Shown here: positions 408-58,641 of the stretch, piece after piece
Layout of the letters: every line of letters starts with the position of its first letter
Numbering within the stretch: the first letter of the stretch is position 1
Origin: Octopus bimaculoides
Taxonomy: Eukaryota
Length of the DNA stretch: 59,310 nucleotides
Assembly (NCBI RefSeq): GCF_001194135.2
Contig: NC_068984.1
Span: forward strand, 74,857,821-74,917,130
Reading direction: 5' to 3'
Program-made: the position numbers and the translations under genes
The notes under the pieces: generated by a model
Database searches by the model: none
What the model saw: the letters and a program-made list of their open reading frames with translations, nothing else
Told to the model about the DNA's origin: nothing

Positions 408-521
408 ATCACACCACAGAACATCAATCTATGCCCAATGGTCATGACTTTGGAGAATTTAGCACTGTCCACAAGGAAAATACTCACCATGGCGGTTCTG
501 GACATGATGCCCTTCAAGAAA
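408..521 (+). CDS. E1, 114 nt: xHTTEHQSMPNGHDFGEFSTVHKENTHHGGSGHDALQE
   Basis: catttttcttcag|AT...GAA A|gtaatc; phase 1-1; flanks paralogous to E2. Confidence 0.8.
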
Positions 522-1666
522 GTAATCGATGCTCAATTTTTCAATATTTTATGATTCTATACTGCCAGTGATTTTATTTTATCATTTAGTCAGAAAACGG
601 TCACGAACAATCAGAACAAAAATATTTTGAAAAATTATAACATTTTCCGGGAGTAATATAACAATTACTTACCATGAATCGATGTTATCCTCAGTTGAAG
701 TGTGTCAGTTGGTGCATATATGTAGGTTGCTTCATTCTCTTCCTTTCCATTTTATCTTTCCTTAACCAACACCAAGTCAACCAGAGACTATATATCTCCA
801 GCAAAACAGGCCTGTGTTGGTTTGTGACGGCGTAACTTTTATTGTTTAGTAAAATCGCTAAAAAGTGCGCAGTGAACATGCTGTGAGCAGGGAAAATTTT
901 CGGATAGAATCCTCCATCAGAAAATTTCGGATAGAATCTTCCATCAGAAAAAAGTTAACAGGAGGGAAATTAACGAAAACCAGCAGAATTTTACATCTTC
1001 TAAAAAAAAATGGCTTCTACTGTGAGGAACACAGGAAAATGGGAGCTTTAAACGTGAAGACGATGTCGTAGGAAAAAAGAGAGTGTGAGAGGTAGAAAGA
1101 AAAAGACATGCAATGACGATGAGAAGCGGATGAAGTCGAGAGTAGGGTGATGGGAGATGAGATGGAAAGGATGTTGAAGAATAAGAAAGGGTTTAGTGAA
1201 CCAAGAGGAATTGTAAGAGTAGAAGAAAATTTGTTCGTTTAAGCCTGTGGGTGACATATCACCAAATTCGAATATGAAGCGTTGTTCCATCCATTTCCTT
1301 GAGAATGTGGATCCATGGTGTTCTATTACTGATAAGTTACTACGGGAATGGCGTGCAATTTTGAAGTGAGTGGTGACAATTTGTCCTAGTAGTATGTTTC
1401 GAATGGGATGCTGAATGTGATCGGCAAGGCATCGGTAAGGTATCAACTAAACAACAGTAAATATAACGGTGGTACAGCTCTGGAATGGATTCAGTGAATA
1501 ATGCAAATATTTTTTTTTTCAATCCGGCCCACAACGAGGTTGACATATTTGGTATCCATCCTAGTTCCACCCCCACTGACTACTTTGTAAAACTTTGCAT
1601 TTTTCACTCTCCACGCCAAGTTCACTGTATTCGTTTTATAGATTTTACCATATATANNNNNNNNNN

Positions 1667-8500: not shown

Positions 8501-11500
8501 AATTAGTTGTGGGACTTTGACTAACTGTAATGCTTTGATAAGTTCCCACGTAATGCTTCGGTTAAGTTCTCACGTTGTTTTCTGATGTTTCTTTCCTGGA
8601 TCATTTTGTTAATTTGTAGCTGCTGTACACAGTCCCACACCTCCATTCTTCTAGCTTGCTCAAGTGTTATAATGCTGCTGGTAGCACTATGATAATGTGA
8701 GAAAAGATTGAGGCACCCAGTGTATGATTTATATGTGATGTTCTAGCAGGCTCTGAGGCGGTAAATTTGGCAAGGTTGGTTTGGCTATTCTGGGACATAA
8801 GGAGAGTCGATACAGTTGATAATCATTACGGCAGTTCTTATATGCTTTGATACATTCTCCATACAACCGTATGAGATCTCGTCGATAAATGGTGAAATTC
8901 TTCAGTCAGTAACTTGGTATGTGGTATGGGCCTGGAGGATTTCCTGTTCAATATTTTCCTTAGAACTGTTTCCATTATTTCGCCGTCTATTGCATATTGC
9001 TTTTGCTGGACATGCTGGAAGTATTCCTACTCCAGTTATTTTAGCCATACAGCTTGTTTGTTGAGTTGATTATTTGTTTCCCATACAGAACTCCAGTGGT
9101 CCTCAACCTGATATTTTGCGGGTGGGGTTTTAGTTTATGTTTTATAGAAGCGTTGACACCGTGATAAAATTACTTGAGATCCCTAAAATAATTTACTGAG
9201 CATTTGCCGTTTATATGCTGTAGATGTATCGTTTAGCTTTTCATTTGTAGCTGCAAGTTGTTGTTAAAGCTGGTCCAGTTTGAAGTTAAGGTTTTTGAAT
9301 CCTTTATCACCAAAATGTGTCTCTAGTTTCTTCTATGGTTTTCCTGTTGTCGTATGAAGTTGTTCTCTGTGTTACATTTCAACGATCTGTGAGATGTCTT
9401 CGCTGGAATAAATTTTATGTATGCGTGTACTTCGCTAAGATTTATGAATTTACACTTTATAATATATCTGCATATATCTTTACATTTTTTTTTTTCAGAT
9501 TACGGCAAAGATCGTATTATGGCCCATGATGTTCACGACGCTGATGAATCTCGAGGTTTTCACTTAGCACGTCCTCCTCACAGGGGCCTTGGTGGTATTG
9601 AACATAGTCTCACAAAACAAAGTAAGTATTTTGCTATACTGCCATTGATTTTATTTCCTTATATAGTCAGAAAACGGTTTCGAACTGGCAGCACCGTTAA
9701 AATGGTTCGCGGTTTTTCTTGCAGAAATTATGTCCTAGATTCTTATCTCGACGAGCTCAAACTTGCCTTTTATCGTTTCAGGATCAATCACATACAGTAC
9801 CAGTCAAGTCCTGTGGTCTATAGAATCGACTAAGTCCTCCTCCATAAGTTCTATCCTTATATCTAAATCAGAATCAATCACCTAGTGAGAAAGAAAACAT
9901 GCCTTGTATTTGATATATGTTTTAAGTTCTGAATGAAAATTTCTTTAAGGTTAAATTCTCTTCCTAGCTCTGAGTTAGAGATAAAGTAATGGCTGTTCCA
10001 ATCCACTAAATATTTGGCATTGTGTCTATGTAAAATAATACATTTTCATCCAAAAGGAATGGTCGAATGTTATAGCTCTATTCGTGTAATTTTGAAATCA
10101 CCATAGTTGACGTCCTATTTTATCTACTTGATCTTCTCAACGAATAGTGGACGAGGAAGAAGCTTCGAGTAAATGCATTTAGTGCATGATCTCTTAAAGA
10201 AAAATAGTATAGGAGTTGAGAATTACAAATATAAATATGTCGGATCTATATGCTAGTTTATAAACACGAGTGTCATTCTAGTAACTTTTTTCCTATTGAA
10301 TGGCAGGAAATCATAAAAGAGGCGGAAAGCGTGAAACGTTAATCAGAGCATTAGTTTATTCTAGCTCGATGTTTTTGTATCATAGACCCTGATCAATATT
10401 AATGAGTCGATAGATAAATTCCTATACTTTTGAATTGGCTATCCTGTTTATTTTCTTGTTATTTTTTTTTTTTTTGTTATATTCTGATATATTTATATTT
10501 ATGATTACCTTAAATGAAAAGAATTTTGCTTCTGTTAGCAATATTTCNNNNNNNNNNGGAATCCGGCCTGGGAGTCGTTTTCCGTAAGCGAGTCGAGGTT
10601 ATTCTGCTATTCGCTCTGGATATCGACATCGGTGTTAAAACGGTGACCTTTGAGCTGCATTTTCATCTTGGAGAAGAGATAGAAGTCCGTAGCTGCTAAA
10701 TCTGGTGAATAGTGTGGGACTGAAGTATTACTTTGTTGTTTTATTGCGAGAAACTCTTGAGTGAAGAGACCTCGGTGTTGAATCCAATTCTTAACCGCTC
10801 CACTTATTCGTTCGCTTTCCCTAAATGTCGTCCCTCAAACGCTTCAAAGCGTCGCAGTAGAACCCTCGATCGACGGTCTGGCTCTGTGTGACGAATTCTC
10901 AATGCACAATATGCACACATTTCCGATGGTAGCGCACATGCCATATCTTCCAGATCACTCATCGCCTTCCAGGGACGTTCTTCCGCTTTAGAAGCACCCG
11001 TTCCACTAAAAGACATTGCGTACGACCCATTATCTCGTCGCCGTCAGCCTGTTGAAGCATGCTCAATGTCTCTGTAGCAGACTTACCAAGTTTAACGCAA
11101 AATTTCACGTTGGATTTTTCTTCCTCTCTATGACAAAATCACACACTACAGCATACACATGATCACAAAAACTTAGATTTCACAACTTGCAAAGTAAACA
11201 CAGTGATGTCACTCGGCACACTGCCTCATAAAGATCACTGCTAGCTCTTACTGCGCACGGAACTATGTATTGCCATCTGTTGGCACGCTACACAACAAAT
11301 CCGGGAACTTTCTGACACCACCACGTGTATGTATGTATGTATGTATATATGTATGTCAAACAATTACTAAACATCCCCCTTTTTTATTTCGATAAATGTG
11401 TATCGATGCATCATGGAACGTATTTTCTTATTTCAAATTAAGGGAATTTGGTTTCTATTTCTAGGGAGTCATCCAAAGAAAAGCATGTGCGATCATGGTT

Positions 11501-11800: not shown

Positions 11801-14800
11801 TGAACAACAAAAACAACAACAACAATAGTAACAATAGCAACAACAACAACAATAATAATAATAACTGCCCTGAAGCAGTATCAGGCAATGGCTCTCATTG
11901 CTTTTGATCTTAACTGGTCGGAAGTGTTATTATGTACATTGTCTTGTCTCGCTATAAAAGATGGGCTACAACAAATAATCTGTTCAATACCACAGATTTG
12001 CTTGTCAGATGTTTTACCTTAACTAGTTGAGCATGTCCCTTAGTGACTGGCGATATGTTATCACAAGGAGAAGTAGTGGGGAAGTATCATAGCCAAGTGT
12101 TGAGAGGAATTCTTTGGGGTTTGAATAATTCATATTCTGGAAACATGGGTCTTTTGTTCATCGTCCTTAAAACAAATTTTGTTCAGGGAAATTTTGAGTG
12201 GAATGAGCGACTCGACCTGAAGAAAATTCTAACTGAGACCCATCTGCAAGGTTATGCGTTGTTAGTGTTAGATCATTTTTGATTCCGGTTGACGTAAGTC
12301 TTGTTATACTTTGTTGTACCTTTGTCGATGGTTCTCCCCGCGCGAGTGAACCATGTTTTGTTGAATTTGTTAAATACCGTTTCTGTTTTTGTTAAATTTT
12401 GTGTTTGTCTTCTTCCCTATTTTGGGGCGAAGTAAATGAAAAAATAAAATAAAATGGAATGTAAACCAGTTCCAGTACATGCCGGGAGTTATGCTTCAGC
12501 AGCTGGGAAAGGTGCAGATTCGCTAGAAGTGCGAAAAAATTAAAATTGAACAAAGGAAGCTAAAGCAATGCTACAGGCTGATTCAGAAGGAGGGATCAAT
12601 TTTAAAACTGACCCCTCCAGAAGAAGTGACAACAAGTACCAAGAAAAGAACAGTGGTGTACAGAACACTGTCTACAACCACAAAGAAAACAGAGATTGCT
12701 ACGGAAGAAGTAATTAAAGAATGTCTGAAGAAAATTAAGCACGGGACAACATTCTATACAAGAGGAAGAACATACGGCACGGTGGAGGTGAGATTTGCCA
12801 ACGAACAGGAAGTAATAAATCATTCCACTGTGACGCTAAATACAGAAAAATGGGTACTTGTGTGGCAAAAGGGTCGCTAGAATTAGAATAAGCAGAGTAC
12901 CACCAGAGATCAAAGAAGCATGGCTGGTGGCAGCCGTAATGCCCAAAACTGAGGAAGACGCCAAAATTCTAAAGGTAAATTGTTGGGGATACGGACTAGA
13001 AATGGTCATCCAGATCGGACAACAAGATCTAAATTAAATTGCTGAAGAAATAATACTATCGAAGGACATAAGGTTGAGAGTGGTGGTAGAAGGAAGGCCA
13101 CCAATTAGCTATTAGAGTAAAGTGTCGAAAGAGAGAAAATAAAAACGAGGAAAGCCAATAGGAGCAGAATGCCGAAATAGCGGACTTAGAAAATGAAAAA
13201 TGCACGAAAGAAGCGGGAGAACCATTTACGGAGGTAACCAAAACGAAAAGGAAAAGAACCAGTGAACTCACCTCCAGAGAGTTCAATAAAGAAAAAAAAC
13301 GTAGAGTGAAATAGACTGTACACATTTTCCACTAAATGAACCTCCACCAGCATCAACAACGAAGGAAAAAGAAAAGGAAACCATCACAGACAACTCAATT
13401 CCACTGCAGGAACGAACAGTCAAAAGACCAGGAAAAAACAAATGACATATGGTATACAAAAAACAAATGGCATATGGTATACAAAAAACAAATGGCATAT
13501 GGTATACAAAAAACACAGATATAGAAGGGGAAATCACCAAATTTAAATCGGTGATAAGAGTTAAATTACCAACGGAACATTACCCAGAAAGTACAACAGC
13601 CATAGTAATAGACAAAGAGAGATATGAGAAATTGAAGAAATGGCTTGGAAACAAAATAGACCCAATAGGATGAAGGTAGAGTTTGACGACCTACCGCCAG
13701 TTATATGTTACGACGACTTGTTGCCATATAATAAATGGTAGAGTGTGAGTAAGCTTAAAAAATTTTAAAGACTACACATACGATATTAAAGGGGAAAAAA
13801 GAGAAAAATAAAGAGAAAAAATTATATAAACACTTTGTACTGAAACAGTTAAATGGTACTGTTTGAGAGTGGGGTTCAAGCGGCTGTTACATCCTCATTT
13901 AAATATTATACATCTTTCATTCATTCGTGTCATTTTTTTGCGCCCATTGTGGTGTTCTGTTTGTCCTTGTGCCGTCCCCCTCTGTGTCATGGCTTGTGTG
14001 CCAAATATAGAAAACAGTCAGCGAAGTATGCCGTACTGGTCAGTCACGCAGACGACGAAATACGTCGTCATAATGCGGGACATATCAATATTTCAGTTCA
14101 AAGTAATCTCAAACATTTAAACATTACTAATTTTATAAACGCAGAAGACTTGCTAGTATGAACATAGTATATATTACTGAGAAATAAATATATCAAGTTA
14201 TATAAAAATATACCTTTGGCTCTTTTTCAGATTCCCTTCAAAGTTATTACCAAAATTACTATCAATTGGGATCCATGAGGCGTAACCCATTAAGAGGTAA
14301 ATATAATTAAACTACACAATGTTTTTTGATCATTGACAAACTACACTGGATTGTAATTGGCTATTTCATCTAAAAGTCTGAAGCAAGTTTATGATTTTTC
14401 ACGATATACCACAGTGCTGAAGGGAATATACTTGGCTTTCTGCTTGATCTTCCTTAGAAACGTATATCTATAGGAAAAAGTGGATAAGAAAAGTGGTCCA
14501 ATGTGCTTTAGTTCCGCTGGAGTACGTTTTCTTTGAAACGCATTCAGTGTAGTGTCTTTGAGAGAAGAAGAGTAAAAGAGATGAGAATTAAAGGCGTACA
14601 TATATCGGATACACATACACACATATATGCATACGCACATATACACATACATAAATGTAAATATGTATCTATTTGTGTGTGTGCGTGCGTGTGTGTTTAT
14701 ATAAGATATAAGTATATTAATACTTATTTTTTAACATCTACTCCTATTTGAAACGTTTAAATATTCTTAATGTTAAAAATTCAGAAGAGGATGTGCTATG

Positions 14801-28895: not shown

Positions 28896-28934
<39 letters not shown>

Positions 28935-45139: not shown

Positions 45140-45937
45140 TGTGTGATTCTAACAATTAAAATTGACACATTGAAAAACTGTATTTAATCACGTGACATTC
45201 GTATTTCAAAGTCATATATGCTTGTTTTCTCTCTCGTCATTGCTGTCTTGTATTTGTCGTTGAATTGTCGCCGTGATTTAGAGATTTCTTGACTTTTTGT
45301 TCACTGGACAAGTGTGTGAGTGGGTGTGTGTATGTGTTTGTGCGTGCGCGTGCGCGTGTGCTTGTGTACGTGTGTGTATGAGTGTGGTACAGAGTTAATG
45401 TATTAGTAAAGAAACTCTGCTTTCGCTAATTCATTAGCTCTTTTGAAAGTAAATTTATATTTTGCAGATATTTACGGATATTTAGGATATTTCTTTATGT
45501 TGCTATCGTTCGAGATAAATTTGATTCATACAGCCACTATAATATATTAATTTCTGACATAAACACAACACAACACAATTTGGAGCGAGAAATTATCAAT
45601 GTTGTTGACGCTAATTAATTAAGAGTTCAGTCGTAATCTTGTCATCCCTAGAAGAAAGAAATGCTAAAAATATTGACTCCGATGTGGCTGAAAATCAGAG
45701 CTTAAAAGGTGTCTAAACATCAGATAATATTTGCGCTGCACCGCGCTTAAAAGACTCCTTCGATTTTATTATTATAGTTTTTGTTTTCAAACGTCACGTG
45801 TGTTATTTCGTATAATTTCAGATCCTTCCAAACCATCAGATCCTTCCAAACCATCAGATGCCATTCCTATACCAGCGAGTAAGATGACATATATTTATTT
45901 ATTTATTTATATTCATTATACGGAACATTTGTGTGTG

Positions 45938-45992
<55 letters not shown>

Positions 45993-47648
45993 ATGTATGT
46001 ATGTATGTATATACGAGAAGGTACCCAAAATAACCGGAAACGTTCTCTGTAGGACAAGCCCATTGTAATTCAGGATTCCGCCACCAATTGCGCACTGGAG
46101 TCGATGTAATCGACTAGTCCCCTCTCACTAAATTTCAGGCCTTAGGTCTACAGTGGAAGGGTTATGTGAGTAGATCGGCAGATTAGAGTATTTGGCAAAA
46201 TAACTTTCTATATTTAGTTACAACTTTTAAGACAGCGAGCTGCCAGAATCGTTAGCATGCCGGGCGAAATGCTTAGCAGTAATTTTTCTGCTGCAACGTT
46301 CTGAGTTGAAATTCCGCCGAGGTCGACTTTGCCTTACATCCTTTCTAGGTCGATAAATTAAGTACCAGTTGAGTACTGGCGTCAATGTGATCGACTGTCC
46401 CCCTCCCCACAAATTTCAGGGCTTGTAGAAAGGATTGTTATTCTTATCATTATTACTATTATTATTATGGCGGCGAGCTGGCAGAATTGTTAACACACTG
46501 GATGAAATGCTTAGCGGTATTTCGCCCGTTGCTACGTTCTGAGTTCAAATTCCACGGAAGTCGACTTTGCCTTTCATCCTTTCGGTATCGATAAATTAAG
46601 TACTAGTTGCGCACTGGTGTCGATCTAATCAACTGGCCCCCTCCTCCAAAATTTCAGGCCTTGTGCCTATAATAGAAAGGCTCATTATTATTATTATGGA
46701 TCTTTTTTAAAACGGGGGCCACATTTTTCATTAACGAAACACTTTGAAACTTGGAACACTGGTAGAATGTGTCATATAAAACATCTTTTTCTCTTAGTCT
46801 TCTTTAAAAAAAAAGAAATCCCTAAGTTATTCCATGTTAAAGTTGTCNNNNNNNNNNNNNNNNNNNNNNNNNNNNNNNNNNNNNNNNNNNNNNNNNNNNN
46901 NNNNNNNNNNNNNNNNNNNNNNNNNNNNNNNNNNNNNNNNNNNNNNNNNNNNNNNNNNNNNNNNNNNNNNNNNNNNNNNNNNNNNNNNNNNNNNNNNNNN
47001 NNNNNNNNNNNNNNNNNNNNNNNNNNNNNNNNNNNNNNNNNNNNNNNNNNNNNNNNNNNNNNNNNNNNNNNNNNNNNNNNNNNNNNNNNNNNNNNNNNNN
47101 NNNNNNNNNNNNNNNNNNNNNNNNNNNNNNNNNNNNNNNNNNNNNNNNNNNNNNNNNNNNNNNNNNNNNNNNNNNNNNNNNNNNNNNNNNNNNNNNNNNN
47201 NNNNNNNNNNNNNNNNNNNNNNNNNNNNNNNNNNNNNNNNNNNNNNNNNNNNNNNNNNNNNNNNNNNNNNNNNNNNNNNNNNNNNNNNNNNNNNNNNNNN
47301 NNNNNNNNNNNNNNNNNNNNNNNNNNNNNNNNNNNNNNNNNNNNNNNNNNNNNNNNNNNNNNNNNNNNNNNNNNNNNNNNNNNNNNNNNNNNNNNNNNNN
47401 NNNNNNNNNNNNNNNNNNNNNNNNNNNNNNNNNNNNNNNNNNNNNNNNNNNNNNNNNNNNNNNNNNNNNNNNNNNNNNNNNNNNNNNNNNNNNNNNNNNN
47501 NNNNNNNNNNNNNNNNNNNNNNNNNNNNNNNNNNNNNNNNNNNNNNNNNNNNNNNNNNNNNNNNNNNNNNNNNNNNNNNNNNNNNNNNNNNNNNNNNNNN
47601 NNNNNNNNNNNNNNNNNNNNNNNNNNNNNNNNNNNNNNNNNNNNNNNN

Positions 47649-48029: not shown

Positions 48030-48806
48030 TGCTTGTAGAGTTTATTATATAGTATAATGTTTTTTCCTTTCTCTTTGTAGGCGCTTATTCATTCGGAAGA
48101 TTTGCTTCTGGTGGAAATGGTACGTCGTTAACTCATATATACAATATTCATGTCGTTAATTTGTGAGAGAGATCTAGAAAATATATTTCCCTTCCAAAAT
48201 CCATAATGCATATTATTCCGAAATCTGCCTGCGACAGGAATATATATACATACATTTGCGGGATCTTTTTTAAAACAGGGGCCACATTTTTCATTAACGA
48301 AACACTTTGAAACTTGGAACACTGGTAGAATGTGTCATATAAAACATCTTTTTCTCTTAGTCTTCTTAAAAAAAAAACAGAAATCCCCAAGTTATTCCAT
48401 GTTAAAGTTGTCGTATTTCTGTAATTTCAACCAATCACTGACGTCCATTCAGCCCATATACATTAAGTGCCGACTACATAAACAAACGATTCTGAAACAA
48501 TTCTATCGGTGATAGCAAATTTAAAAAGAAAAAAGAAAAACGAAGCTATCGAAATTAAATACGCTTTACACCGCTTAATCAGCCAAAGGAGTAAATGTAA
48601 ACAACTGAATACTTGTCAGTGATTGGTTGAAATTATCGAAATAAGACAATTTTTTACATGAAATAAATTCGAATACAAAAATATTTTTCTGTTCTATAAC
48701 ACAAAATAGATAAGTATACGAAGTTTGAAAGTCTTTCGGTACCAAAAACACTACGTAAAACATTAATGAAAAATGTGGCCCCCGTTTTAAAAAAGATCCC
48801 ATTTGC

Positions 48807-49537: not shown

Positions 49538-49538
49538 T

Positions 49539-49584: not shown

Positions 49585-51509
49585 CTGTTGTATAATATGC
49601 GAGAGTGAATGTATGTTTTGTCTTCTTACATGTCTGTTTATTGAATAGCTAGAATACATATTTGACATAAATATTTGCATAACGTGACACGAATTACATT
49701 TCATGATCCTGTATCAGATTTATTCTCTGTGATAACTGCGTTGTTATGCATTTTTAAAAATCTATCAGGAAGATATAATAGTTTCAAGTACATAATGCCC
49801 TTACATTTTAGGATGTTCGAGATTCCTGTCTTTGTAAGGCAAAGATTACCGATTATATCGTAGACAAACAGTTCTGTAACCGTGGTGTGCGCAGATGAAA
49901 TATTTTCGTTAGCGAAAGACCAATTTGATTTGTTGGTCCGGACAAGTTACCCGATTAAGATGATGAAGGTATTGCAGAAACGTCAGAACTTCGGACAAAA
50001 TACAATCTCAGTTCAAATCACACCAAGATCATTTTTGCCTTTTATTCTTTCGGTGTCGATAAAATGAAGTACTGGCCATGAACTGGGAGTTGTTGATGTT
50101 GCAGTAAATTTGAAACAATATTGAACCTCTACTATAGACAAACGATTCCTTTATCTATAAGACATTGGTTATAACTGATTTCTAGCATTGCAAAAAAAAA
50201 TGGTTTTAATTATTGTGACAACAGAGTTAATGAGACACCGAGTAAGTTACAGAAAACTACATGAGCTAATACGGCAAGATTCAGACTCAAACTGTAAAGG
50301 AAGATTAGCTTGTTGTTGGCACTCCGTCGCTTACGACGTCAAGGGTTCCAGTTGATCCGATCAACAGAACAGCCTGCTCGTGAAATTAACGTACAAGTGG
50401 CTGAGCACTCCACAGACACGTGTACCCTTTACGTAGTTCTCGGGGATATTCAGCGTGACACAGTGTGACAAGGCTGACCCTTTGAATTACAGGCACAACA
50501 GAAACAGAACGTAAGAGAGAAAGTTGTGGTGAAAGAGTACAGCAGGGTTCGCCACCATCCCCTGCCGGAGCCTCATGGAGCTTTCGGTGTTTCCGCTCAA
50601 TAAACACTCACAACGCCCGGTCTGGGAATCGAAACCGCGATCCTATGACCNNNNNNNNNNNNNNNNNNNNNNNNNNNNNNNNNNNNNNNNNNNNNNNNNN
50701 NNNNNNNNNNNNNNNNNNNNNNNNNNNNNNNNNNNNNNNNNNNNNNNNNNNNNNNNNNNNNNNNNNNNNNNNNNNNNNNNNNNNNNNNNNNNNNNNNNNN
50801 NNNNNNNNNNNNNNNNNNNNNNNNNNNNNNNNNNNNNNNNNNNNNNNNNNNNNNNNNNNNNNNNNNNNNNNNNNNNNNNNNNNNNNNNNNNNNNNNNNNN
50901 NNNNNNNNNNNNNNNNNNNNNNNNNNNNNNNNNNNNNNNNNNNNNNNNNNNNNNNNNNNNNNNNNNNNNNNNNNNNNNNNNNNNNNNNNNNNNNNNNNNN
51001 NNNNTATTATTACTGTTGCCTTTGCACAGCTTCTAACGCTGGAGATGTACTACAGTGTCAGCTGTTCACTTCCAGTGAACTAAGGTAAGACCTCTTATTT
51101 TTCGAGCACCATCCGGAGTATTCGAGCGGTTCCAAGTAGTGCTGTTTTCTGCAAGTGCTCCACTCTTATTGCATCCCCTATTTGTTCCATGTACTTCTCG
51201 AGATTTTTGCTCACTGTTCCTAGCGCTCCGACAATTATTGGTATTACTGCTACCTTTTTCATCGACCACAACTGCCTAACCTCCCAAGCTAACCTGTCAT
51301 ATCTATCGACTTTTCTTTCTTCCTTATGGGGATAGTCGATTACATCGACCGAAAGGAAGAATGGCAAAGTCGACCCTGGCGGAATTTGAACTCAGAACGT
51401 AGCAGCAGACGAAATACCGCTATGCATTTCGTCCAACCTGCTAACGATTCTGCCAGTTCGCCGCCTTCTAATAATTATTTATCATTATTATTATTATTAT
51501 TATTATTAT

Positions 51510-51790: not shown

Positions 51791-52982
51791 TCTTTATTCA
51801 CTGCAAAGTGTTCACAATTAATAACAATAAATTTTTCAATTTTAGATACTGCCATGAACACAACAGTTCCTGCTGAAGATGCAAAGAGTGAGTTGACACA
51901 CAAATCATTTATCTTCTATCTTGCACTTGTTTCAGTCATTGGACTGCGACCATGTGGGGACACCACATTGAAGGGTTTAAACAGAACAAATGGGCACCAG
52001 TGCTTATTATTTGTTTTTAAGTCTGCTACTAAGTCTATCGGTTTCTTTGGCCCTACCGCTAAATTACTCGAGCGTAAGCAAACCAACATCGGTGTCAAGC
52101 GGTGGGGGGGGGGTACAAAGAGACACAAAGACACACACACACACATATATATGTCAAGTGGTAGGGAGACAAACAGACACAAAACCACACTCACACATAC
52201 ACACACACATATGACGTTTTATATATATATCTTTGTGTGTGTGTGTATGTGTGTGTCTTTCGTGTGTCTGTTTATCCCCTCCCCCACCGATTGACACCGG
52301 CGTTGGTTTGTTTGCCCTCTCGTAACTTAGCGGTAGGGCTAAAGAAACCGATAGAATAAGTAGCAGGTTTAAAAACAGATAATAAGTACTGGTATCCATT
52401 TGTTCCGTTTACAAATATACATATTTATAATACAGAAATGGCAATTTCTGTCTGTCGATCTGTCAGTTACCACCCTGCTGCCTACACCAGTGAACCAAAC
52501 TTGACGAAACTTTGCATACATGTTAAACAAACATCCAGTTCAATTTTAAGCTAATTGGATTTCAATAACAATCTATAATGGGCCCCCTAGTTAGGGTTGG
52601 GCTAACATTTGATAAAATTGAGAAGGGTGCAAGAGTGTTAATATGAGGGAAATGTCATAGCATAGTGAATGTGGCTGATATCAGGGAAGGGGATAACAGC
52701 GTTGTGTAAGCGACAAATATGGAGTGACGGTGGGATGATAACGTCAATGCAGCTGTCATAAGTAACTTTTAAAACGCCGAGGAAGGGAAAGAAAGGTTGG
52801 TATGAGGAATACGTAGCTTTAAGAAGAGGTGGCTTTTTCTGCTGTCCATCGCAAAGAAACACTCACACACAGAAACACACGCACACATATACACATATAT
52901 ATATACATACATAAATACGAACATACTCATGATTACCTATGCAAGTTTGTAAATGTGTGTGTGTTTCAATACGTGTGTGTGG

Positions 52983-54193: not shown

Positions 54194-56606
54194 GAACTTG
54201 AGCAGGAACAAACTTATAAATACCTCGGAATAAATAAAGGCTCGGAATAAACAACTGACTGAGAGGTGGGAACCTCTGCATGGCAAATATGTGGCCCGTA
54301 GTAAACAAGCTGATGTAGACCAGAAGCACACTCATCAGTGGCTACTGACCTCAAGGCTAAAGGCAGAGAGTTTATTGACCCGCATCTACCAAGCCAATGT
54401 GATGAAAATTGGAGTAGACTCAAAGTGCCGATACTGCAACGATGGGATTGAAACAAGGGACCACTTAGTTACAGGGTGTAGAATTTTAGCACTTCTAGAG
54501 TATAAATCAAAACATGACAGACTTGACCAATATTTACACTAGAAAATATGTCGGCATTATAAAACCAAAATTGCTGACAAATTGTATAAGCACCACGCTG
54601 AGGTTGTAACTGAGGGAGAAGGTGTATCGATTCTCTGGGACTTTCCAGTACATACAGACCGGATCATCAAAATTAATAAACCAGATATTGTTGTGAAAGA
54701 CCAAAACAATAAAGTTTGTTTATTGATTGACATGAGCATACCTTGTGATCATAATATCTCGGCAAAACATTTCGTAAGCTCAGGAAATATAAAGAATTAT
54801 AAACTGAAATCGAATAATGTGGCATCTCAAGATGGTTACAATATTAGTCATTGTAAGAGCACTTGGAATTATCAAAAAAGGAACTGAAAATTATTCGAGA
54901 ATGAACCCTAGCTTACAATCCATGCAAGAAGTGCAAAAGATCGTTTGACATGTCATAAATATTGCGAAGTGCATTGTCACTGTGGATTTGTTTTTCTTTT
55001 TTGCCCCTTTATTTTCTGTTTTCTTTTTCTTTCCATGTTTTTCCTATTTTTTTCGTTTTCCTGCTTCCTTTTTTTCTTTCTTTCGTCTTTTTTTTTTTCT
55101 ATCAGTTAACTTGACGTTGAAAATGGACAATCTGGTGTGTTTATTTTAGTAGCAAATGCATACATAAGGTTTCCTTGCACTAGGTGTCGGAAAGACACTC
55201 AGAAAGAAATGGAAACAAAATAATAATAATAATAATAATAATAGTAATCTTTTCTACTCTAGGCACAAGGCCCGAAATTTTGGGGGAGAGAGCCAGTCGA
55301 TTAGATCGATCCCAGTACGCAGCTGGTACTTAATTTATCGATCCCGAAAGGATGAAAGGTAAAGTCGACCTCGGAGGAATTTGAACTCAGAACATAAAGA
55401 CAGACGAAATACCGCTAAGCATTTCGCCCGGCGTGCTAACGTTTCTGCCAGCTTGCCGCCAATTATAAATGCTCTGATACAATCCCAGACACTGGCTCAC
55501 ATGGTCTCTGATCTTAACTAATTGGAAGTGCTATCATGTACATGTTTTGTTTACATATAAAATATGGCGTACAGTAAATATTCTGCTCAATACCACAGAT
55601 TTGCTTGTGAATTGCTTGGCCTTAACCAGTTGAGCATGTCCTTTAGTGGCTGACGATATGTGCAGCCACTTCTGATCATGAGTAGAAGTAGTCGGGGAGC
55701 ATCATAGCCATGTGTTAAGGGGAATTCTCTGAGGTTTCAATAATTCACCTCTGGAAACATGGGTGTTTTGTTTAACATCCTTAAACATTATCAAGGACGT
55801 TTTGAGAGGGATGAGGAACTCGACCTGAAGAAAATTCTGAGACCCACCTACAAGGTCATGCACTGTGTATACTGATATGATATCACCATGTCACGTACAT
55901 ATGGTTGTGATACATGTGTCTGATGTAATCTTAGCAGATGGGTAGTCATGATGTGTATACTAGGCTTCGTATAGTTGCACTCCAGTGTCACTTTGACGGC
56001 ATTCGCTACTCTCACATTCAATAACAACAATAATGCACACCTCTGTAGCTGATTATGCACTTCATATTCTTTTCTACTCTAGGCACAAGGCCCGAAATTT
56101 TGCGGCTGGGGGCCAGTCGATTAGATCGACAACAGTACGCAACTGGTCCTTAATTTATCGACCCCCAAAGGATGAAAAGCAAAGTCAACCTCGGCGGTAT
56201 TTGAACTAAGAACGTAAAGACAGACGAAATACCGCTAAGCATTTCGTCCGGCGTGCTAACATTTGTGCCAGGTCACCGCCTTATACACTCCATATTAGAA
56301 ACGCAATTGTTTCTTGAATGTAAATAATATCATTTCTTCTACTTTTAGATACTACTACAAACGCAACAGTTACTGGTATGTATGCAAAATGTAAGTTGAT
56401 ATACAAATCATTTATTTTTATCTTTCACTTGTTTCAGTCATTGGACTGTGACCATATTGGGACCCCACTTTAGAGGGTTTTATTGAACAAATGAACACCA
56501 GTACTTATTATCTGTTTTTAAGTCTGCTACTTGATTTCTTTGGCCCTGCCGCTAAGTTACGGGAGCGCAAACAAACCAGTACTCGTTGTTACGAGGTGAG
56601 GGTCAA

Positions 56607-56651: not shown

Positions 56652-58641
56652 NNNNNNNNNNNNNNNNNNNNNNNNNNNNNNNNNNNNNNNNNNNNNNNNN
56701 NNNNNNNNNNNNNNNNNNNNNNNNNNNNNNNNNNNNNNNNNNNNNNNNNNNAGATAGATAGATAGATAGATAGACAATTATTTTATATCATTGGTGTGAC
56801 ATTTTAACCAAAGTATATTGACAAGACAGGATGACCTTGTTTTTAAAAATGTCATTAGTTAGACCACGAGACAAAGAAATGCTTTATGTCCATATAAGGA
56901 TAATGTGTAAATATATTTCGATAGAAGAATGTTTTATATTCTTTCTTCTACTTCCAGATACAAACCCGGTGTACTAACGACAGCATCAACTTGTATAAAG
57001 ACGACATTTCACACCCACACACGCACACAGTGCACACGTGCACGTGCGTGTTCACGCAAACACACACTAATACAAAACAACAGTTATCTATTTGTTCTGA
57101 TCTAACCGACTATATACCCTCTCTTCCTATAGTTTTATAGACATCTATTTTTGTCATGGTTATTGTCATAGTTGTTGTCATAGCTGTTGCTGTTGCTTTC
57201 ATAGTTGTTGTTGTTGCTGTTGATGTTGATGTTTTCGTTTAATCGCAGTTTAGTCCTGATGAAGCACATCTAAGATCACACAGACTTCCAGCAATAATTA
57301 TCCCGTATTTTTTCTTTCAATATATCAAGATCTACATGAACAAGTTTATCTTTATTTTAATATGGTAGGGTTGTGATTTCCAGTACGCTGCCATATAGGG
57401 ATTCACTCAATAGGCATACACCTGAACTTCTAACTTCAACTAGTAAAAAAGTATTTCTTATTAATTCAATAAATGTAGAGTTTACTTTAACAAATATTTT
57501 GGTTCTTTTCTTTTTCTTTTACCATTTTCAGCTAGTTCCAGCGATACAGCTTTTAACCCTGAAGCCTCCGAAGGTAAGTTGGTAAACATACATATATAAG
57601 TATGCGTGTGTGTATGTGTGTATAAATCTATGCTTAAAAACAAATTTCACTGTAAAAATAATTTCACGTGTTCATCACAGAATCCATTTTATGTTACTTA
57701 ATGTAGTGGTTATAACGAAAACTACAAAAGACAAACGAGAGTTTGAGAAACAGACTCAGTATTCATAGGCAACAAATACGAGATCCTAATACTGGACAGA
57801 TTCCACTAAGTGAACATTTAAACTTATGAGCAACAAAAATCACCGAAATTCCTTCTCACTTAACTTTTGCTCTGTGAAAAACAAGATCAAATACACACAC
57901 ACACACTCATATGTATATATACATGCACGCCCACACACAAACACACACATATACACACACACACACACACAACCAACCTGCATGCGCATTGGTCAAAACC
58001 ATATTCCAAAACTTTAGCTTGCTGGAGCGTTCTAAGAGGTAATGCAGTTGTCAAGAACTCAACTGGCAATTAAATACATTTTGAAATCTGATGATTGTTA
58101 CGAACGTATGGCGTCGCTAATTGATCTTTATGTACATTACAAAATATTATTTTAATGTTAAAATTCCATAATCAAAAAGGTGAAAACCAGGCCATGTTTT
58201 AACGTTATTCAACTGATATATTATTCTATACACATTCACGCAAATTTGGAAAATATGTATATACATATGCACATGTATATATATATACACACATACACAC
58301 ACGTATCATCTTCCAGCTTTTTACGCATTTGAGATGAATGAAAAGTAGAAAATGGCCTTGATTTCATAATGGTCAATAGCTATAAAACGAGACAGTCAAT
58401 TATATCAAGATCTAGTTTATATTTATTTTAATATGGTAGGGCTGTGATTTCCAGTACGCTGCCATATAGGGATTCGCTCAATAGGCATACACCTGAACTT
58501 CTAACTTCAACTACTGAAAAAGTATGTCTTATTAATTCAATAATTGTAATCTTTACTTTAAAAAATTTTTTTTTTTTTTTCTTCTTTTACCATTTTCAGT
58601 TAGTTTCAGCGATACAGCTTTTAACCCTGAAGCCGCCATAA
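408..58641 (+). CDS. Partial multi-exon gene built from symmetric phase-1 micro-exons (E1-E19); unknown low-complexity, probably secreted or mucin-like protein; 5' and 3' ends lie outside the window
   Basis: 18 clear exons plus 1 tentative exon, each with pyrimidine tract+AG and GT donor, length divisible by 3, open in phase 1; concatenation gives an uninterrupted frame of 381-396 codons with no Cys. Confidence 0.8.
1081..1450 (-). mobile_element. Penelope-like element fragment (GIY-YIG endonuclease C-terminus plus 3' region)
   Basis: ORF 1048..1446: LADHI..VTTHF..HSRSNLSV..EQRFIFEFGDMSPTGLNE. Confidence 0.7.
2000..2840. repeat. Fold-back of an unclassified ~340-bp dispersed repeat (family E): about 1.4 direct units followed by one inverted unit
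   Basis: 2005-2130 matches 2345-2470; 2475-2840 is the reverse complement of 2000-2360. Confidence 0.85.
3400..3880 (+). mobile_element. Penelope-like element, decayed GIY-YIG endonuclease
   Basis: CPLEGNCLEKGIVY..Y..HQNSF..KISWTILEKAKPY..CSLCLTEKLFI..LNQRRELL. Confidence 0.8.
5709..5714 (+). CDS. Candidate 6-nt micro-exon (AT CTC T)
   Basis: ttatttttatgctgttag|ATCTCT|gtaagt; symmetric phase 1; starts with AT like most exons of this gene. Confidence 0.3.
5760..6325 (+). repeat. Two tandem copies (period about 351 bp) whose head belongs to repeat family E
   Basis: ctatttgccaac..gatggga..ttag.c.ccaggaaacat.gtttccag..ttattgccctttatc.gcacagagta.ctgcttg occurs twice. Confidence 0.85.
6775..7663 (-). 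mobile_element. 5'-truncated Penelope-like element: endonuclease C-terminus flanked by inverted pLTR-like arms
   Basis: ORF 7076..7342 (VATHFNTVNHSIADLSV..EQCLIFYVGTMSPTGVNE); arms 6780-7108 and 7320-7660 are reverse complements. Confidence 0.8.
7593..7630 (+). ncRNA. Degenerate minimal hammerhead-ribozyme-like motif (second copy on - strand at 6811-6843)
   Basis: ccCTGACGAaagatcgcatccGAAAcgttgg: CUGANGA/GAAA core, short stem II, palindromic stem III, located in a PLE terminal repeat. Confidence 0.5.
8150..9250 (-). mobile_element. Decayed R4/NeSL-type (RLE) non-LTR retrotransposon, RT region
   Basis: Minus-strand translation WELIKALQLVKVPQLIVSAVERL..SDSLSVKLFLLLLDSLSYL..ITHL; stops and frameshifts. 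Confidence 0.6.
9499..9621 (+). CDS. E2, 123 nt: xYGKDRIMAHDVHDADESRGFHLARPPHRGLGGIEHSLTKQ
   Basis: ttttttttttcag|AT...CAA A|gtaagt; phase 1-1; paralog of E1. Confidence 0.85.
10558..11330 (-). mobile_element. Internally deleted mariner element
   Basis: TIR-like end tacacgtggtggtgtcagaaagttcccgga; N-terminal FCVKLGKSATETLSMLQQA; C-terminal PDLAATDFYLFSKMKMQLKGHRF. Confidence 0.75.
11572..11752 (-). mobile_element. SINE family A
   Basis: Reverse complement of the family A body. Confidence 0.75.
11880..12250. mobile_element. Dispersed repeat family D (second copy at 55480-56015)
   Basis: Shared tgatcttaact..ggaagtg..caataccacagatttgcttgt..actcgacctgaagaaaattct. Confidence 0.75.
12450..13670 (+). 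mobile_element. Decayed L1/Tx1-like LINE ORF1 fragment containing a 3 x 25-bp internal repeat at about 13435-13515
   Basis: RTVVYR..YGTVEVRFANE..RVPPEIKEAWL..LRVVVEGRPP. Confidence 0.55.
14231..14296 (+). CDS. E3, 66 nt: xSLQSYYQNYYQLGSMRRNPLR
   Basis: tctttttcag|AT...AGA G|gtaaat; open in phase 1. Confidence 0.75.
14830..15213 (-). mobile_element. tRNA-derived SINE, family C, full length (second copy at 50311-50650 runs into a gap)
   Basis: Minus-strand head gtggaggcgcaatggcccggtggttagggtagcggactcgcggtcataggatcgtggtttcgattccc with A/B-box-like motifs; two highly similar copies. Confidence 0.85.
16506..16701 (-). mobile_element. SINE family A, diverged
   Basis: ggcacaaggcc..gtcgattacatcga..atttgaactcagaa..gaaatgccgttaagca. 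Confidence 0.7.
16878..16916 (+). CDS. E4, 39 nt (or 33 nt using the inner donor): xLQTLASFASNGN
   Basis: atttcag|AT...AAT G|gtgaga; alternative donor G|gtaatg after 16910; ends FASxGNG like E15. Confidence 0.7.
17150..17590 (+). mobile_element. Heavily decayed mariner transposase fragment
   Basis: Remnants of GVVHFE..TI..YCQQ..PALVNREGII..PYSPDVVPSDF. Confidence 0.6.
18020..18700 (-). mobile_element. L1/Tx1-like ORF1 fragment
   Basis: FPDILKMAGSRYPVTLEGRPPSVT followed by a basic low-complexity linker; same motif as the element at 12450-13670. Confidence 0.55.
21697..21723 (+). CDS. E5, 27 nt: xYGGVATPA
   Basis: ttatattccacag|AC...GCA A|gtaagtcgat. Confidence 0.8.
22030..22480 (-). mobile_element. 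Possible decayed Penelope-like endonuclease fragment
   Basis: Minus-strand ..QICTARNLEILYAKTTNSQ.. resembles the GIY-YIG C-terminal motif seen at 3400-3880. Confidence 0.35.
23833..24292 (+). mobile_element. tRNA-derived SINE, family B, full length, with internal (TA)n(GA)n microsatellite
   Basis: ggcgcaggagtggctgtgtggtaag..ccgggttcattcccactgcgtggcaccttgggcaagtg..tgactgaaacaagtaaaagag. Confidence 0.85.
24976..25008 (+). CDS. E6, 33 nt: xSAEMFAKKEN
   Basis: ttttataccatcacag|AA...AAC G|gtaagttgatatac. Confidence 0.8.
27216..27260 (+). CDS. E7 (tentative), 45 nt: xNIFMHMNVWLNVNL
   Basis: aacattttcag|GA...TTA G|gtatgt; open in phase 1, but the composition is atypical for this gene and it has no paralogous flank. 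Confidence 0.4.
28172..28275 (+). repeat. Two ~40-bp direct repeats (gacagtgatttcaaagtttc.ctggccttctgtatgtaaa)
   Basis: Direct reading. Confidence 0.85.
28792..28833 (+). CDS. E8, 42 nt: xKNNKASSSGGHPT
   Basis: ttttaattacag|AT...ACC A|gtaagt; upstream flank paralogous to E9. Confidence 0.85.
28935..29790 (+). mobile_element. R4/NeSL-type non-LTR element, N-terminal region (Myb-like), decayed
   Basis: RKRLKWTKENNKLLFQCY..YMKRLLELW..DQIRKI..KRLPSLK..LMYVAAYVI. Confidence 0.6.
29790..30450 (+). mobile_element. Mariner 3' half (catalytic domain remnant plus TIR)
   Basis: GIVFIDYLQKGHTINGEYCANLLRQLRKAIK..VLFHQDD..SPDLVASDYHL. Confidence 0.85.
30730..30771 (+). CDS. E9, 42 nt: xKYKQIAAAARNEA
   Basis: ttttttaattacag|AG...GCC G|gtaagttgac. 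Confidence 0.85.
30786..31220 (-). mobile_element. SINE family B, full length, starting about 15 nt after the E9 donor
   Basis: atcttttatcttttacttgtttcagt...ttcccaaggtgcaacgcag..cagccacgccagcacc. Confidence 0.8.
32271..32300 (+). CDS. E10, 30 nt: xSSRQKGKRK
   Basis: atcttcctcttttag|GT...AAA A|gtaagttgatat. Confidence 0.75.
32684..32897. mobile_element. Small MITE-like element with short TIRs, abutting the mariner downstream
   Basis: cttgacagtaaatcaaaa ... ttttgatttactgtcagg. Confidence 0.45.
32902..34173 (+). mobile_element. Near full-length mariner (about 1.27 kb); transposase pseudogene at 33088-34096
   Basis: TIRs tatcagttcatgccataagttctgtccga / tcggacagaacttatgggatgacctgata in TA context; MEVSKEYLRHILLYEYKKG..*VPHEL..HQDNARPH..YSPDLAPSDYHLF; stops and frameshifts. 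Confidence 0.95.
34380..34620 (+). mobile_element. Decayed mariner 5' fragment
   Basis: FCIKLAKNATETYEML-like translation. Confidence 0.45.
35000..35873 (+). mobile_element. Tc1/mariner element of DD41D (rosa/VS)-like type, internally deleted and frameshifted
   Basis: FSDEATVHVSGHINRHNC..QDRAP-(42 aa)-PCDFVLW; degenerate TIRs sharing gccaaaatta. Confidence 0.75.
37654..37692 (+). CDS. E11, 39 nt: xSKTEEFITSNEN
   Basis: tgctatttttcag|TG...AAT G|gtatgc; flanks paralogous to E12 and E15. Confidence 0.8.
38102..38140 (+). CDS. E12, 39 nt: xPERVGQSTTNEN
   Basis: tttctattttcag|AG...AAT G|gtgcgt; lies 448 bp downstream of its paralog E11. Confidence 0.8.
40082..41884. mobile_element. Non-autonomous fold-back element with ~380-bp TIRs and an AT-rich ~1.05-kb core
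   Basis: 40082-40458 is the reverse complement of 41503-41884 with scattered mismatches. Confidence 0.9.
42330..42840 (+). mobile_element. Penelope-like element fragment (RT C-terminal linker into GIY-YIG)
   Basis: EIARINNNCS..LNGYLPSLV..LKLPLFDD..CPINNPELCQGTYVV*EITCGKCGASYI. Confidence 0.8.
43966..44250 (+). CDS. E13, 285 nt repeat exon: xTDTNHTTHANGTAHANSTTHT-(K[G/D/S]TSPM)x9-KGTTHAKGSAPTKDSADTK
   Basis: ttcttttatacctag|GC...AAA G|gtaaga; overlaps supplied ORF 43944..44507; 18-bp periodicity in frame. Confidence 0.85.
43977..44246 (+). repeat. Coding minisatellite, 15 x 18 bp; 9 near-perfect core units aaa(g/a)(g/a)tacttcacctatg at 44031-44192
   Basis: Direct reading of the tandem units. 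Confidence 0.95.
44940..45094 (-). mobile_element. SINE family B, 5' half
   Basis: ctttcagtttcc..atccactcacaagg..cccaaggtgtcacg..acgcctgcgcct. Confidence 0.7.
45822..45878 (+). CDS. E14, 57 nt: xPSKPSDPSKPSDAIPIPA
   Basis: tataatttcag|AT...GCG A|gtaaga; internal 18-bp duplication. Confidence 0.8.
46231..46680 (+). mobile_element. Two tandem SINE family A copies (46231-46433 and 46469-46680)
   Basis: g(g)cggcgagctggcagaat heads with complete bodies. Confidence 0.85.
46698..46847 (+). mobile_element. Left end of a second copy of the GGATC-terminated MITE, running into a gap
   Basis: Near-identical to 48261-48410. Confidence 0.85.
48081..48119 (+). CDS. E15, 39 nt: xAYSFGRFASGGN
   Basis: cctttctctttgtag|GC...AAT G|gtacgt; downstream intron resembles that of E12. 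Confidence 0.8.
48261..48799. mobile_element. Complete ~540-bp MITE with GG termini and an 8-bp TSD (CATTTGCG); Merlin-like
   Basis: TIRs ggatcttttttaaaacaggggccacatttttcattaa / ttaatgaaaaatgtggccccgttttaaaaaagatcc; catttgcg at 48253-48260 and 48800-48807. Confidence 0.8.
51005..51325 (-). mobile_element. R4/Dong-like element 3' end (RLE C-terminus)
   Basis: EERKVDRYDRLAWEVRQLW..VIPIIVGALGTV..LQKTALLGTARILR; ends in (TAA)n. Confidence 0.8.
51328..51745 (-). mobile_element. Two partial SINE family A copies separated by (TAT)n(TAG)n
   Basis: Reverse-complement family A motifs. Confidence 0.7.
51846..51887 (+). CDS. E16, 42 nt: xTAMNTTVPAEDAK
   Basis: tttttcaattttag|AT...AAG A|gtgagttgac; paralog of E17. 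Confidence 0.8.
51908..52400. mobile_element. SINE family B 3' half (- strand) plus a second copy (+ strand), forming an inverted pair
   Basis: 52010-52150 is the reverse complement of 52235-52390. Confidence 0.8.
53762..53915 (-). mobile_element. SINE family B, 5' half
   Basis: acgacggcttctttcagtttcc..ccttggtcggccc..atagtagaagacact. Confidence 0.75.
54000..54190. repeat. Compound trinucleotide microsatellite (AAT)n(AAG)n(AAC)n(AAT)n
   Basis: Direct reading. Confidence 0.95.
54191..55220 (+). mobile_element. R4/Dong-like non-LTR element 3' portion: CCHC zinc knuckle, RLE endonuclease and 3' UTR
   Basis: CRYCNDGIETRDHLVTGC..ILWDFPVHTD..KPDIVV..LIDMSIP; (TAA)n on both sides. Confidence 0.85.
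55251..55460 (-). mobile_element. SINE family A, full length (another copy at 56068-56280)
   Basis: cttttctactctaggcacaaggcccgaaatttt...ctgccagcttgccgcc. Confidence 0.85.
56349..56390 (+). CDS. E17, 42 nt (or 27 nt using the inner donor): xTTTNATVTGMYAK
   Basis: tttcttctacttttag|AT...AAA T|gtaagttgatatac; inner donor G|gtatgt after 56375. Confidence 0.8.
56410..56610 (-). mobile_element. SINE family B 3' half directly after E17, at the same position as the copy after E16
   Basis: cttgtttcagtcattggactg..tttttaagtctgctact shared with 51908-52060. Confidence 0.8.
56958..56977 (+). pseudogene. E17b: duplicated acceptor leading to an in-frame stop (xTNPVY*); pseudo-exon or alternative terminal exon
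   Basis: tttcttctacttccag|ATACAAAC parallels the E17 acceptor; TAA at 56975-56977; no phase-1 donor before the stop. Confidence 0.4.
57532..57573 (+). CDS. E18, 42 nt: xSSSDTAFNPEASE
   Basis: ttttaccattttcag|CT...GAA G|gtaagttgg. Confidence 0.85.
58600..58641 (+). CDS. E19, 42 nt: xSFSDTAFNPEAAI
   Basis: ttttaccattttcag|TT...ATA A|gtaagttgg; tandem duplicate of E18. Confidence 0.85.
   Translation, partial: LVSAIQLLTLKPP

Follow-up and report, generated by a model that had tools for sequence, protein, structure and literature searches.

An apparently Octopus-restricted gene built of short symmetric exons that diverge faster than their introns

What kind of gene, if any, lies behind a string of short exons, all in one phase and each a multiple of three nucleotides long, strewn along a 59,310-nt stretch of Octopus bimaculoides DNA? 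This stretch (the window hereafter; G+C 35.5%, with 13 runs of N) had been read in an earlier note, from its letters, as a hidden gene analogous to the micro-exon genes (MEGs) of Schistosoma and to tropoelastin. The combination of symmetric cassettes with rapid change has been described as a flatworm trait tied to host-parasite conflict, and MEGs as restricted to platyhelminths (PMC4350168). A non-homologous gene of MEG design in a free-living cephalopod would mark the architecture as one that arises convergently and serves generally to make proteins variable, and would provide a workable study system in an animal for which genomes, Iso-Seq data and tissues are available. Our analyses show that the window holds the middle part of a real octopus protein-coding gene, which extends beyond the window end, and they bear in differing degrees on how that gene is spliced, how it evolves and what it may do.

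The + strand was scanned for AG...GT segments measuring a multiple of three and free of stops in the phase 1-1 frame (the first two exon bases complete a codon and the last base begins one), and these were ranked by a simple acceptor plus donor score. From 2791 raw open candidates, 18 + strand exons were recovered, all AG/GT-bounded, all multiples of three and all phase 1-1, with lengths of 114, 123, 66, 39 (four exons), 27, 33, 42 (six exons), 30, 285 and 57 nt. Most measure 27-66 nt, with a mode at 39-42 nt; three are longer (114-285 nt), and three of the 18 are 36 nt or less (27, 30 and 33 nt). Microsatellites and transposon remnants are abundant in the window, and the introns between the exons (409-8977 nt) are packed with both. 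When joined, the exons form 1143 nt whose phase-1 frame is free of stops, while the two remaining frames contain 14 and 29; not one of 20000 nucleotide shuffles of the joined exons left the frame open. At the same splice-score thresholds, symmetric candidates open in the exon frame number 24 on the + strand and 3-11 per frame on the - strand; given this excess, and an independent O. vulgaris annotation of equal architecture (below), the array exceeds chance. The earlier note's AG/GT-bounded phase 1-1 exons, its introns of 0.4-9 kb and its open, Cys-free joined frame therefore stand, as do 18 of its exon lengths, which match exactly; its additional 45-nt exon is not corroborated. A candidate for the latter at 35846-35890 was rejected, the O. 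vulgaris sequence having an AA acceptor and a length of 49 nt, which is not a multiple of three. A second 45-nt AG/GT segment (27216-27260, + strand) is doubtful, being 100% identical in O. vulgaris, hydrophobic unlike the other exons, and not accelerated in its divergence. Also doubtful is a 66-nt hydrophobic phase 1-1 candidate on the + strand (28518-28583), whose O. vulgaris equivalent (55640-55708) is a 69-nt open AG/GT segment that differs by one 3-nt indel and two substitutions, an intron-like rate.

A search with the joined peptide against 5.8 billion clusters returned a single protein, P0001, a 307-amino-acid O. vulgaris 'Hypothetical predicted protein' that is collinear with the window exons at 9499, 16878, 21697, 24976, 43966 and 48081 and with those encoding the DTAFNPEA motif. 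HMMER against 1.84 billion representative proteins gave only P0001 and one weak match (P0002), and no match to any MEG family. P0002 (E = 4e-4) was rejected as a homologue, since it is an uninterrupted reading frame from a metagenome contig whose product combines a trypsin-like domain with repeats of 15 residues, and its resemblance is a repeat-driven chance one. A word-indexed search with P0001 as query found only itself and no isoform proteins, and Pfam gave nothing above threshold, only sub-threshold DUF matches. The gene is thus an orphan that, on present sequence databases, appears restricted to Octopus; of the octopus proteomes covered by the searches, only that of O. vulgaris carries a model of it. 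These results agree with the earlier note in that the gene had effectively been hidden and that it comes from a cephalopod. The further suggestion that no cephalopod gene of such design was known must be qualified, in that GenBank already holds the O. vulgaris model, where it passed unremarked. In the literature we found no relevant report on micro-exon genes in octopus, cephalopods or molluscs, nor on four peptide motifs of this gene, which can be called essentially undescribed before.

The genomic locus of P0001, a 105.7-kb segment of O. vulgaris chromosome record OX597817.1 (L001), aligns collinearly and on the same strand with the window over L001 19,050-85,839. The aligned blocks total 36.9 kb, with a mean identity of 87% (88.6% per window base), and the O. 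vulgaris gene is some 85 kb to more than 95 kb long. Re-derivation of the P0001 structure on L001 gave 16 exons; each of the 15 introns is in phase 1, and the 14 internal exons are without exception phase 1-1 (66, 114, 30, 30, 33, 150, 39, 42, 42, 42, 42, 42, 48 and 42 nt). The model takes its ATG from the interior of an AG-bounded exon of 66 nt (L001 9969-10034), which indicates that it is 5'-truncated. Downstream of the exon at 84491-84532, L001 contains six further exons, the last ending in a stop at L001 95656. Between 28.5 and 95.3 kb of L001 we count 24 phase 1-1 exons, 14 of which are included in the one isoform annotated for the gene; the model leaves out about ten exons that are conserved as coding. 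The two species are reported to have split approximately 34 million years ago, and the O. bimaculoides assembly is extremely fragmented (PMC10700109); both points, like the degree of divergence between the two loci, fit O. bimaculoides as the source of the window.

Taken along the window (all exons phase 1-1 and on the + strand, orthologues by L001 coordinate, 'in the model' meaning included in P0001), the array begins with a 114-nt exon at 408-521 (HTTEHQSMPNGHDFGEF...), a diverged paralogue of the unit that carries the exon at 9499. The peptide of this exon and the stretch 557-629 of the intron downstream find their match in the O. vulgaris 28518 unit, and the L001 alignment holds no collinear orthologue of the exon. 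The His/Gly-rich 123-nt exon at 9499-9621 has its orthologue at 28518-28631 (114 nt, AG/GT), in the model, with an identity of 0.67-0.69 against 0.92 in its flanks. A Tyr-rich 66-nt exon (14231-14296; YYQNYY) corresponds to 38338-38403 (66 nt, AG/GT, open), which is not in the model, and shows an identity of 0.76 against flanks of 0.95. Three short exons that are all in the model follow: 39 nt at 16878-16916 (43008-43037, 30 nt, a change of -9), 27 nt at 21697-21723 (47336-47365, 30 nt, +3) and 33 nt at 24976-25008 (50455-50487, 33 nt). The next five have orthologues that the model omits, namely 42 nt at 28792-28833 (55921-55968, 48 nt, +6, AG/GT), 42 nt at 30730-30771 (60054-60095, 42 nt; identity 0.83 against 0.95 in the flanks), a basic 30-nt exon with SSRQKGKRK at 32271-32300 (61516-61548, 33 nt, +3), and two of 39 nt at 37654-37692 (65909-65947, 39 nt) and 38102-38140 (66356-66394, 39 nt).

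The largest exon (285 nt, 43966-44250), which carries N-x-T sequons, has an orthologue in the model that is 135 nt shorter (71542-71691, 150 nt); an 18-nt repeat encoding TSPMK[GDS] runs for 9.7 copies at 44031-44205 within it, and O. vulgaris has one unit only. Beyond it lie a 57-nt exon with PSKPSD twice (45822-45878; orthologue 72936-72974, 39 nt, -18, not in the model) and a 39-nt exon with FGRFASGGN (48081-48119; 75539-75577, 39 nt, in the model). A 42-nt exon at 51846-51887 (80178-80219, 42 nt, not in the model) is the sole exon that matches its flanks in conservation (0.95). Its 42-nt paralogue at 56349-56390 aligns with an AC in place of the acceptor in O. vulgaris, where an AG 6 nt upstream yields a 48-nt in-frame exon (82037-82084). 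Last come two 42-nt exons that are DTAFNPEA repeat units, at 57532-57573 (83397-83438, not in the model) and 58600-58641 (84491-84532, in the model); O. vulgaris has five exons of this type.

None of the 18 window exons contains N, and 12 of the 13 assembly gaps are flanked on both sides by collinear, same-strand O. vulgaris anchors, so that exon order and orientation hold at those gaps. The one unbracketed gap is at 1657-1666 (10 N), positions 1-2035 of the window having no collinear O. vulgaris match; as a result, the exon at 408-521 is linked to the others by scaffolding alone. The gap at 44259-44484 begins 8 nt 3' of the donor of the 285-nt exon, and the donor itself was read; the true length of this exon could differ, in multiples of 18 only. 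One O. vulgaris model exon, 42 nt at L001 77174-77215 (ASKAANATTEHEM), is matched nowhere in the sequenced part of the window. Because it falls between the anchors that flank the gap at 50651-51004, one more 42-nt exon may be hidden in that gap.

With exons and flanks aligned to their O. vulgaris counterparts, 17 exons could be tested. In O. vulgaris all 17 retain AG at the acceptor, GT at the donor, a length that is a multiple of three and an open frame, the exon at 56349 being counted by way of its acceptor shifted 6 nt. All eight length changes between the species (-9, -9, +3, +6, +3, -135, -18 and +6 nt) are multiples of three, whereas only 69 of 301 indels in the aligned introns (23%) are. 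Unconstrained substitution at the exon rate would be expected to create 4.2 stops, and none is seen (P = 0.012). Splice sites, length in threes and frame are therefore kept despite an intron difference of about 9-11%, and on this comparative evidence the array consists of genuine coding exons.

The sequences also record how the array grew. Units of exon plus intron are paralogous within the window: 408 with 9499; 28792 with 30730, and 30730 with 51846 and 56349; 37654 with 38102 and 48081; and 57532 with 58600, the last pair being 90% identical over 439 nt. In O. vulgaris, three 5.2-kb tandem repeats, each with two phase 1-1 exons (at least six more), lie upstream of the P0001 start. Judged from these similarities, the gene has expanded by tandem duplication of exon-plus-intron units, and serial duplication of one kind of unit accounts for the uniform phase 1-1.

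Would the cassettes also be skipped? All 153 possible forward exon-exon junctions have a sense codon at the join; as all exons are symmetric, any pattern of skipping keeps the frame, as the earlier note had supposed, and combinatorial exon skipping is a plausible property of the gene. There is an indirect sign as well: P0001 jumps 21 kb, from L001 50455-50487 to 71542-71691, past five conserved and well-formed exons. The O. vulgaris annotation was built from Iso-Seq and RNA-seq junctions via PASA and EVM (PMC10700109), and the model chains 30-nt exons over introns of up to 21 kb, so that P0001 is likely of transcript origin. Since the five jumped exons are conserved as coding yet omitted by a probably transcript-derived model, we think that at least some cassettes are alternatively included. 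We accordingly favour, with reasonable though far from full confidence, a reading as one large, Octopus-restricted gene of short phase 1-1 exons in tandem-duplicated units, whose residues change fast under a constraint on frame and whose cassettes are partly alternative.

In this gene the coding sequence is a string of short symmetric exons, mostly of 27-66 nt, grown by unit duplication, in which selection keeps frame and splice sites and lets, or most likely favours, residue change. The 18-nt repeat within one exon has expanded to about ten copies in O. bimaculoides, and skipping could add or remove modules of 9-40 residues (95 for the 285-nt exon) harmlessly. Variation could then arise on four levels, namely substitution, indels or repeat changes in multiples of three, duplication or loss of exons, and exon skipping.

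Among the alternatives, the strongest is a constitutive structural or mucin-like gene in which all cassettes are always included, the O. vulgaris model being incomplete and the shared phase a by-product of duplication. A uniform phase does follow automatically from tandem duplication of one unit, and the splice sites look strong at all exons. The extra conservation of intron flanks that usually marks regulated cassettes was not seen in the window-L001 comparison, the flanks being not markedly above deep intron, and one annotated isoform with no isoform proteins found is also what such a gene would give. Moreover, micro-exons are often missed by annotation, and this common failure might account for the omitted exons. 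On the other hand, a 21-kb jump over five conserved exons is unlikely to come from an ab initio predictor working without junction evidence, and the O. vulgaris pipeline drew on both RNA-seq and Iso-Seq junctions. We regard the constitutive gene as a serious contender that is nonetheless unlikely to be correct.

The rate at which the exons change bears on a second alternative. Exons are 77.9% identical between the species (793 nt), compared with 88.8% for the 35,308 bases aligned outside exons (p = 7e-18 by Fisher's test), and counting substitutions only, the values are 81.7% and 91.4% (p = 1.6e-16). By codon position, identity is 73.9%, 77.0% and 83.0% for positions 1, 2 and 3; positions 1 and 2 thus diverge above position 3, the reverse of the pattern of purifying selection. 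Nei-Gojobori estimates over 269 aligned codons gave dN 0.22 (bootstrap 0.18-0.27) and dS 0.18, with dN/dS 1.22 (0.85-1.89), an interval that includes 1. Against an intron divergence of 0.09-0.12, dN is 1.8-2.4 times higher (p = 6e-9), in a comparison that covers two species and takes its intron rate from alignable sequence only, which may underestimate it. The ten exons omitted by P0001 are accelerated too (80.7% identity, p = 1.6e-6), in our view the strongest indication at present that they function as exons under a shared regime. These comparisons indicate that the encoded residues change about twice as fast as the introns, and that exon lengths drift by multiples of three only. Selection thus guards translatability and not residue identity, and most likely it favours residue change. 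The earlier note had missed this feature, the strongest at the locus: exons at about twice the intron rate, with frame and splice sites strictly kept.

The alternative is relaxed constraint in place of positive selection, with the protein a disordered spacer that needs only an approximate composition and is free to drift neutrally in its residues as long as frame and splice sites persist. It draws on the dN/dS interval, which spans 1, and on the low-complexity composition and predicted disorder of the product (below). Neutral drift, however, predicts the intron rate, which the observed dN clearly exceeds, and it does not predict that codon positions 1 and 2 should diverge above position 3. We therefore judge relaxed constraint improbable as the whole account. 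At 0.18, dS too surpasses the intron rate; a local rise in mutation or gene conversion, or neutral residue drift under frame constraint, could explain part of the signal.

The joined product has 380 amino acids, among which S, T, A, K, G, P and N are the commonest (S 48, T 43, A 36, K 32, G 31, V 7) and Cys and Trp are absent. At 0.38, its mean normalised hydropathy falls short of the Uversky boundary (0.417). In AlphaFold2 the mean pLDDT was 44, and no part but two C-terminal helices reached 64-70, though low confidence in a single-sequence run is weak evidence of disorder. By these predictions the product is a Cys-free, low-complexity and probably intrinsically disordered protein. It would probably also be extracellular and glycosylated; N-x-S/T sequons are not significantly enriched beyond what its composition gives (8 observed, 5.5 +/- 2.0 expected). 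Outside the window, the gene is inferred to encode an N-terminal part that is acidic and rich in Ser, and a C-terminus that is short and helical.

What lies upstream matters for a third alternative, that the array is the linker or stalk of a larger gene whose folded domains are encoded upstream of both the window and L001. The 5' end is indeed outside the data, the P0001 ATG being internal to an exon, and the 5.2-kb repeats place at least six more phase 1-1 exons upstream of that ATG. Yet the 10 kb 5' of the annotated O. vulgaris start consists of micro-exon repeats only, no neighbouring gene was called within the 105.7 kb of L001, and no other protein with these exons was found, all of which makes a stalk with distant folded domains rather doubtful. 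Finally, that the array is no gene at all and represents chance AG...GT segments, a pseudogene or a non-coding transcript is extremely improbable, for although short open segments are frequent by chance (the 2791 raw candidates) and a known domain was not found, 380 codons stay open where no shuffle did, splice sites and lengths in threes are kept in 17 of 17 exons with eight of eight length changes in threes against 23% in introns, no stop is seen where 4.2 are expected, substitution depends on codon position, and a second species has a collinear annotated protein.

How does this gene compare with known systems? It is like the Schistosoma MEGs in placing most of its coding sequence in short symmetric exons (18 of 18 in the window and 14 of 14 internal exons of P0001), and in being a lineage-restricted orphan with tandem expansion in transposon-rich DNA. 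MEG micro-exons reportedly measure about 6-36 nt, in contrast to the octopus exons, which are mostly of 39-42 nt, with only three of 18 within that range. The octopus gene also lacks sequence similarity to any MEG family, and its protein far exceeds the small MEG products in length. MEG-1, -9 and -15 reach dN/dS values of 1.10-1.14, and a ratio near or above 1 is shared by the octopus gene at 1.22 (PMC4350168 for the MEGs). For MEGs, signal peptides, secretion and isoforms that arise by skipping have been documented (PMC4015677). By this analogy, the octopus gene is best described as a convergent analogue of the MEGs, to which it would be functionally closest, and not as a member of their class.

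Other fast-evolving or modular genes are more distant. In conotoxin genes, exons diverge above introns and trinucleotide indels occur (PMC3862624); the octopus gene resembles these and snake-venom genes in exons that evolve faster than introns and in indels that are multiples of three. It differs from them in having no Cys framework (no Cys in 380 residues), no visible pre-pro-mature organisation, and many exons as opposed to two or three. The internal exons of tropoelastin are all symmetric and phase 1, modular and repetitive, and tolerate skipping. With tropoelastin and other extracellular-matrix cassette genes the octopus gene shares the uniform phase 1-1 exons and the modular, repetitive structure; unlike tropoelastin, it has only 7 Val in 380 residues, no alternation of hydrophobic (G/V/P) and Lys-Ala cross-linking segments and no homology, and it evolves rapidly and is not conserved. 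The MEG and tropoelastin analogies drawn in the earlier note are thus sound as to the symmetric phase-1 design and fail as to exon size, which is above that of classical micro-exons, and as to any sequence relationship. SmPoMuc genes carry tandemly repeated small exons, and the Ser/Thr/Pro-rich TSPMK repeat (9.7 copies), which differs in copy number between the species, recalls them and the PTS domains of mucins. Unlike in mucins, this repeat makes up 175 nt of one exon, its array is not in O. vulgaris, and outside it the protein does not resemble a mucin.

A bolder proposal can be made from these likenesses, namely that octopus independently evolved a MEG-like system in which a single orphan gene, by combinatorially skipped and duplicated cassettes under positive selection, yields secreted disordered variants at a contested interface. 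We advance it tentatively, as a possibility against which the balance of evidence presently leans. The interface driving such change could involve reproduction, pathogens, saliva, or adhesive or cuticular material; if the proposal is true, gamete recognition, contact with pathogens or symbionts, saliva and an adhesive surface would be candidates, and the gene would be the first such variation system outside flatworms.

Standard annotation leaves genes of this kind unannotated or truncated. Unbiased exon finding by dips in interspecies identity was not discriminating in the window (exons lie at three of 20 dips, most of which are microsatellite or indel sites). Exons that diverge faster than their introns and change length only by multiples of three form a joint signature that could be used as a genome-wide screen for similar genes.

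In O. vulgaris, the locus L001, which is orthologous to the window, holds three tandem repeats of 5.2 kb upstream of the annotated start (L001 1-16000), each contributing two additional phase 1-1 exons. The first exon type is 51 or 72 nt long (SSENLSDNHGDDDSSE) and the second 66 nt (SSENPHRNMHMFNNRDDGSSE); both are acidic and carry recurring S-x-E motifs, a composition reminiscent of secretory phosphoproteins. As the ATG of the annotated O. vulgaris model lies inside one of these upstream-repeat exons, that model is 5'-truncated. P0002, a protein encoded on metagenome contig ERZ25072999 (L002), joins 15-residue TEDKAAINPEVDLR repeats to a trypsin-like peptidase domain. Its match to the DTAFNPEA repeats of the octopus gene was weak (E = 4e-4); its coding sequence is a single uninterrupted ORF, and we judged it unrelated.

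Synonymous divergence of the exons (dS = 0.18) exceeds the divergence of the introns (0.09-0.12; window, whole gene), which hints at mutation targeted to exons, gene conversion among exon paralogues, or low-complexity codons that were wrongly aligned. Within the 285-nt exon, an in-frame 18-nt tandem repeat encoding TSPMK[GDS] (window 44031-44205) reaches 9.7 copies, as opposed to one unit in O. vulgaris; the array adjoins an assembly gap (44259-44484), and thus this copy number may be an assembly error.

Two further exon candidates are doubtful. At window 27216-27260, a 45-nt open, AG/GT-bounded segment (NIFMHMNVWLNVNL) matches O. vulgaris at 100% identity, compared with 94% for its flanks, so that it is more conserved than its surroundings, the reverse of the pattern in the gene's exons. 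The other, a hydrophobic 66-nt phase 1-1 candidate (28518-28583, SFIISMTVTTFPLPTFESNVS), lies 208 nt 5' of exon 28792 and corresponds in O. vulgaris to an in-frame AG/GT-bounded segment of 69 nt; its divergence equals the intron rate.

Three intronic segments, all on the + strand (window 33586-33978, 29861-30115 and 54234-54539), gave Pfam matches: mariner-type transposase fragments (Transposase_1, E = 3e-25 and 5e-12) and a sub-threshold match to zf-RVT, a reverse-transcriptase zinc-binding domain (E = 1.5e-4; it scored 22.8 bits, where 27.5 is the cut-off). Long + strand intronic ORFs at 12259-14828 and 29128-29586, Lys/Glu-rich and of 117-153 aa, had no Pfam match and are probably retroelement remnants; the former region aligns to O. 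vulgaris at ~83% identity, and the insertion is therefore old and common to both species. A short interspersed repeat at 181-362 has at least 15 copies in the O. vulgaris locus, on both strands, at 70-85% identity. Finally, several exon donor sites have (TG)n or (TA)n microsatellites within ~10-20 nt downstream (28834-28940, 45879-46030, 57574-57620 and 58642-58690), which appear to be a component of the duplicated exon-intron unit.
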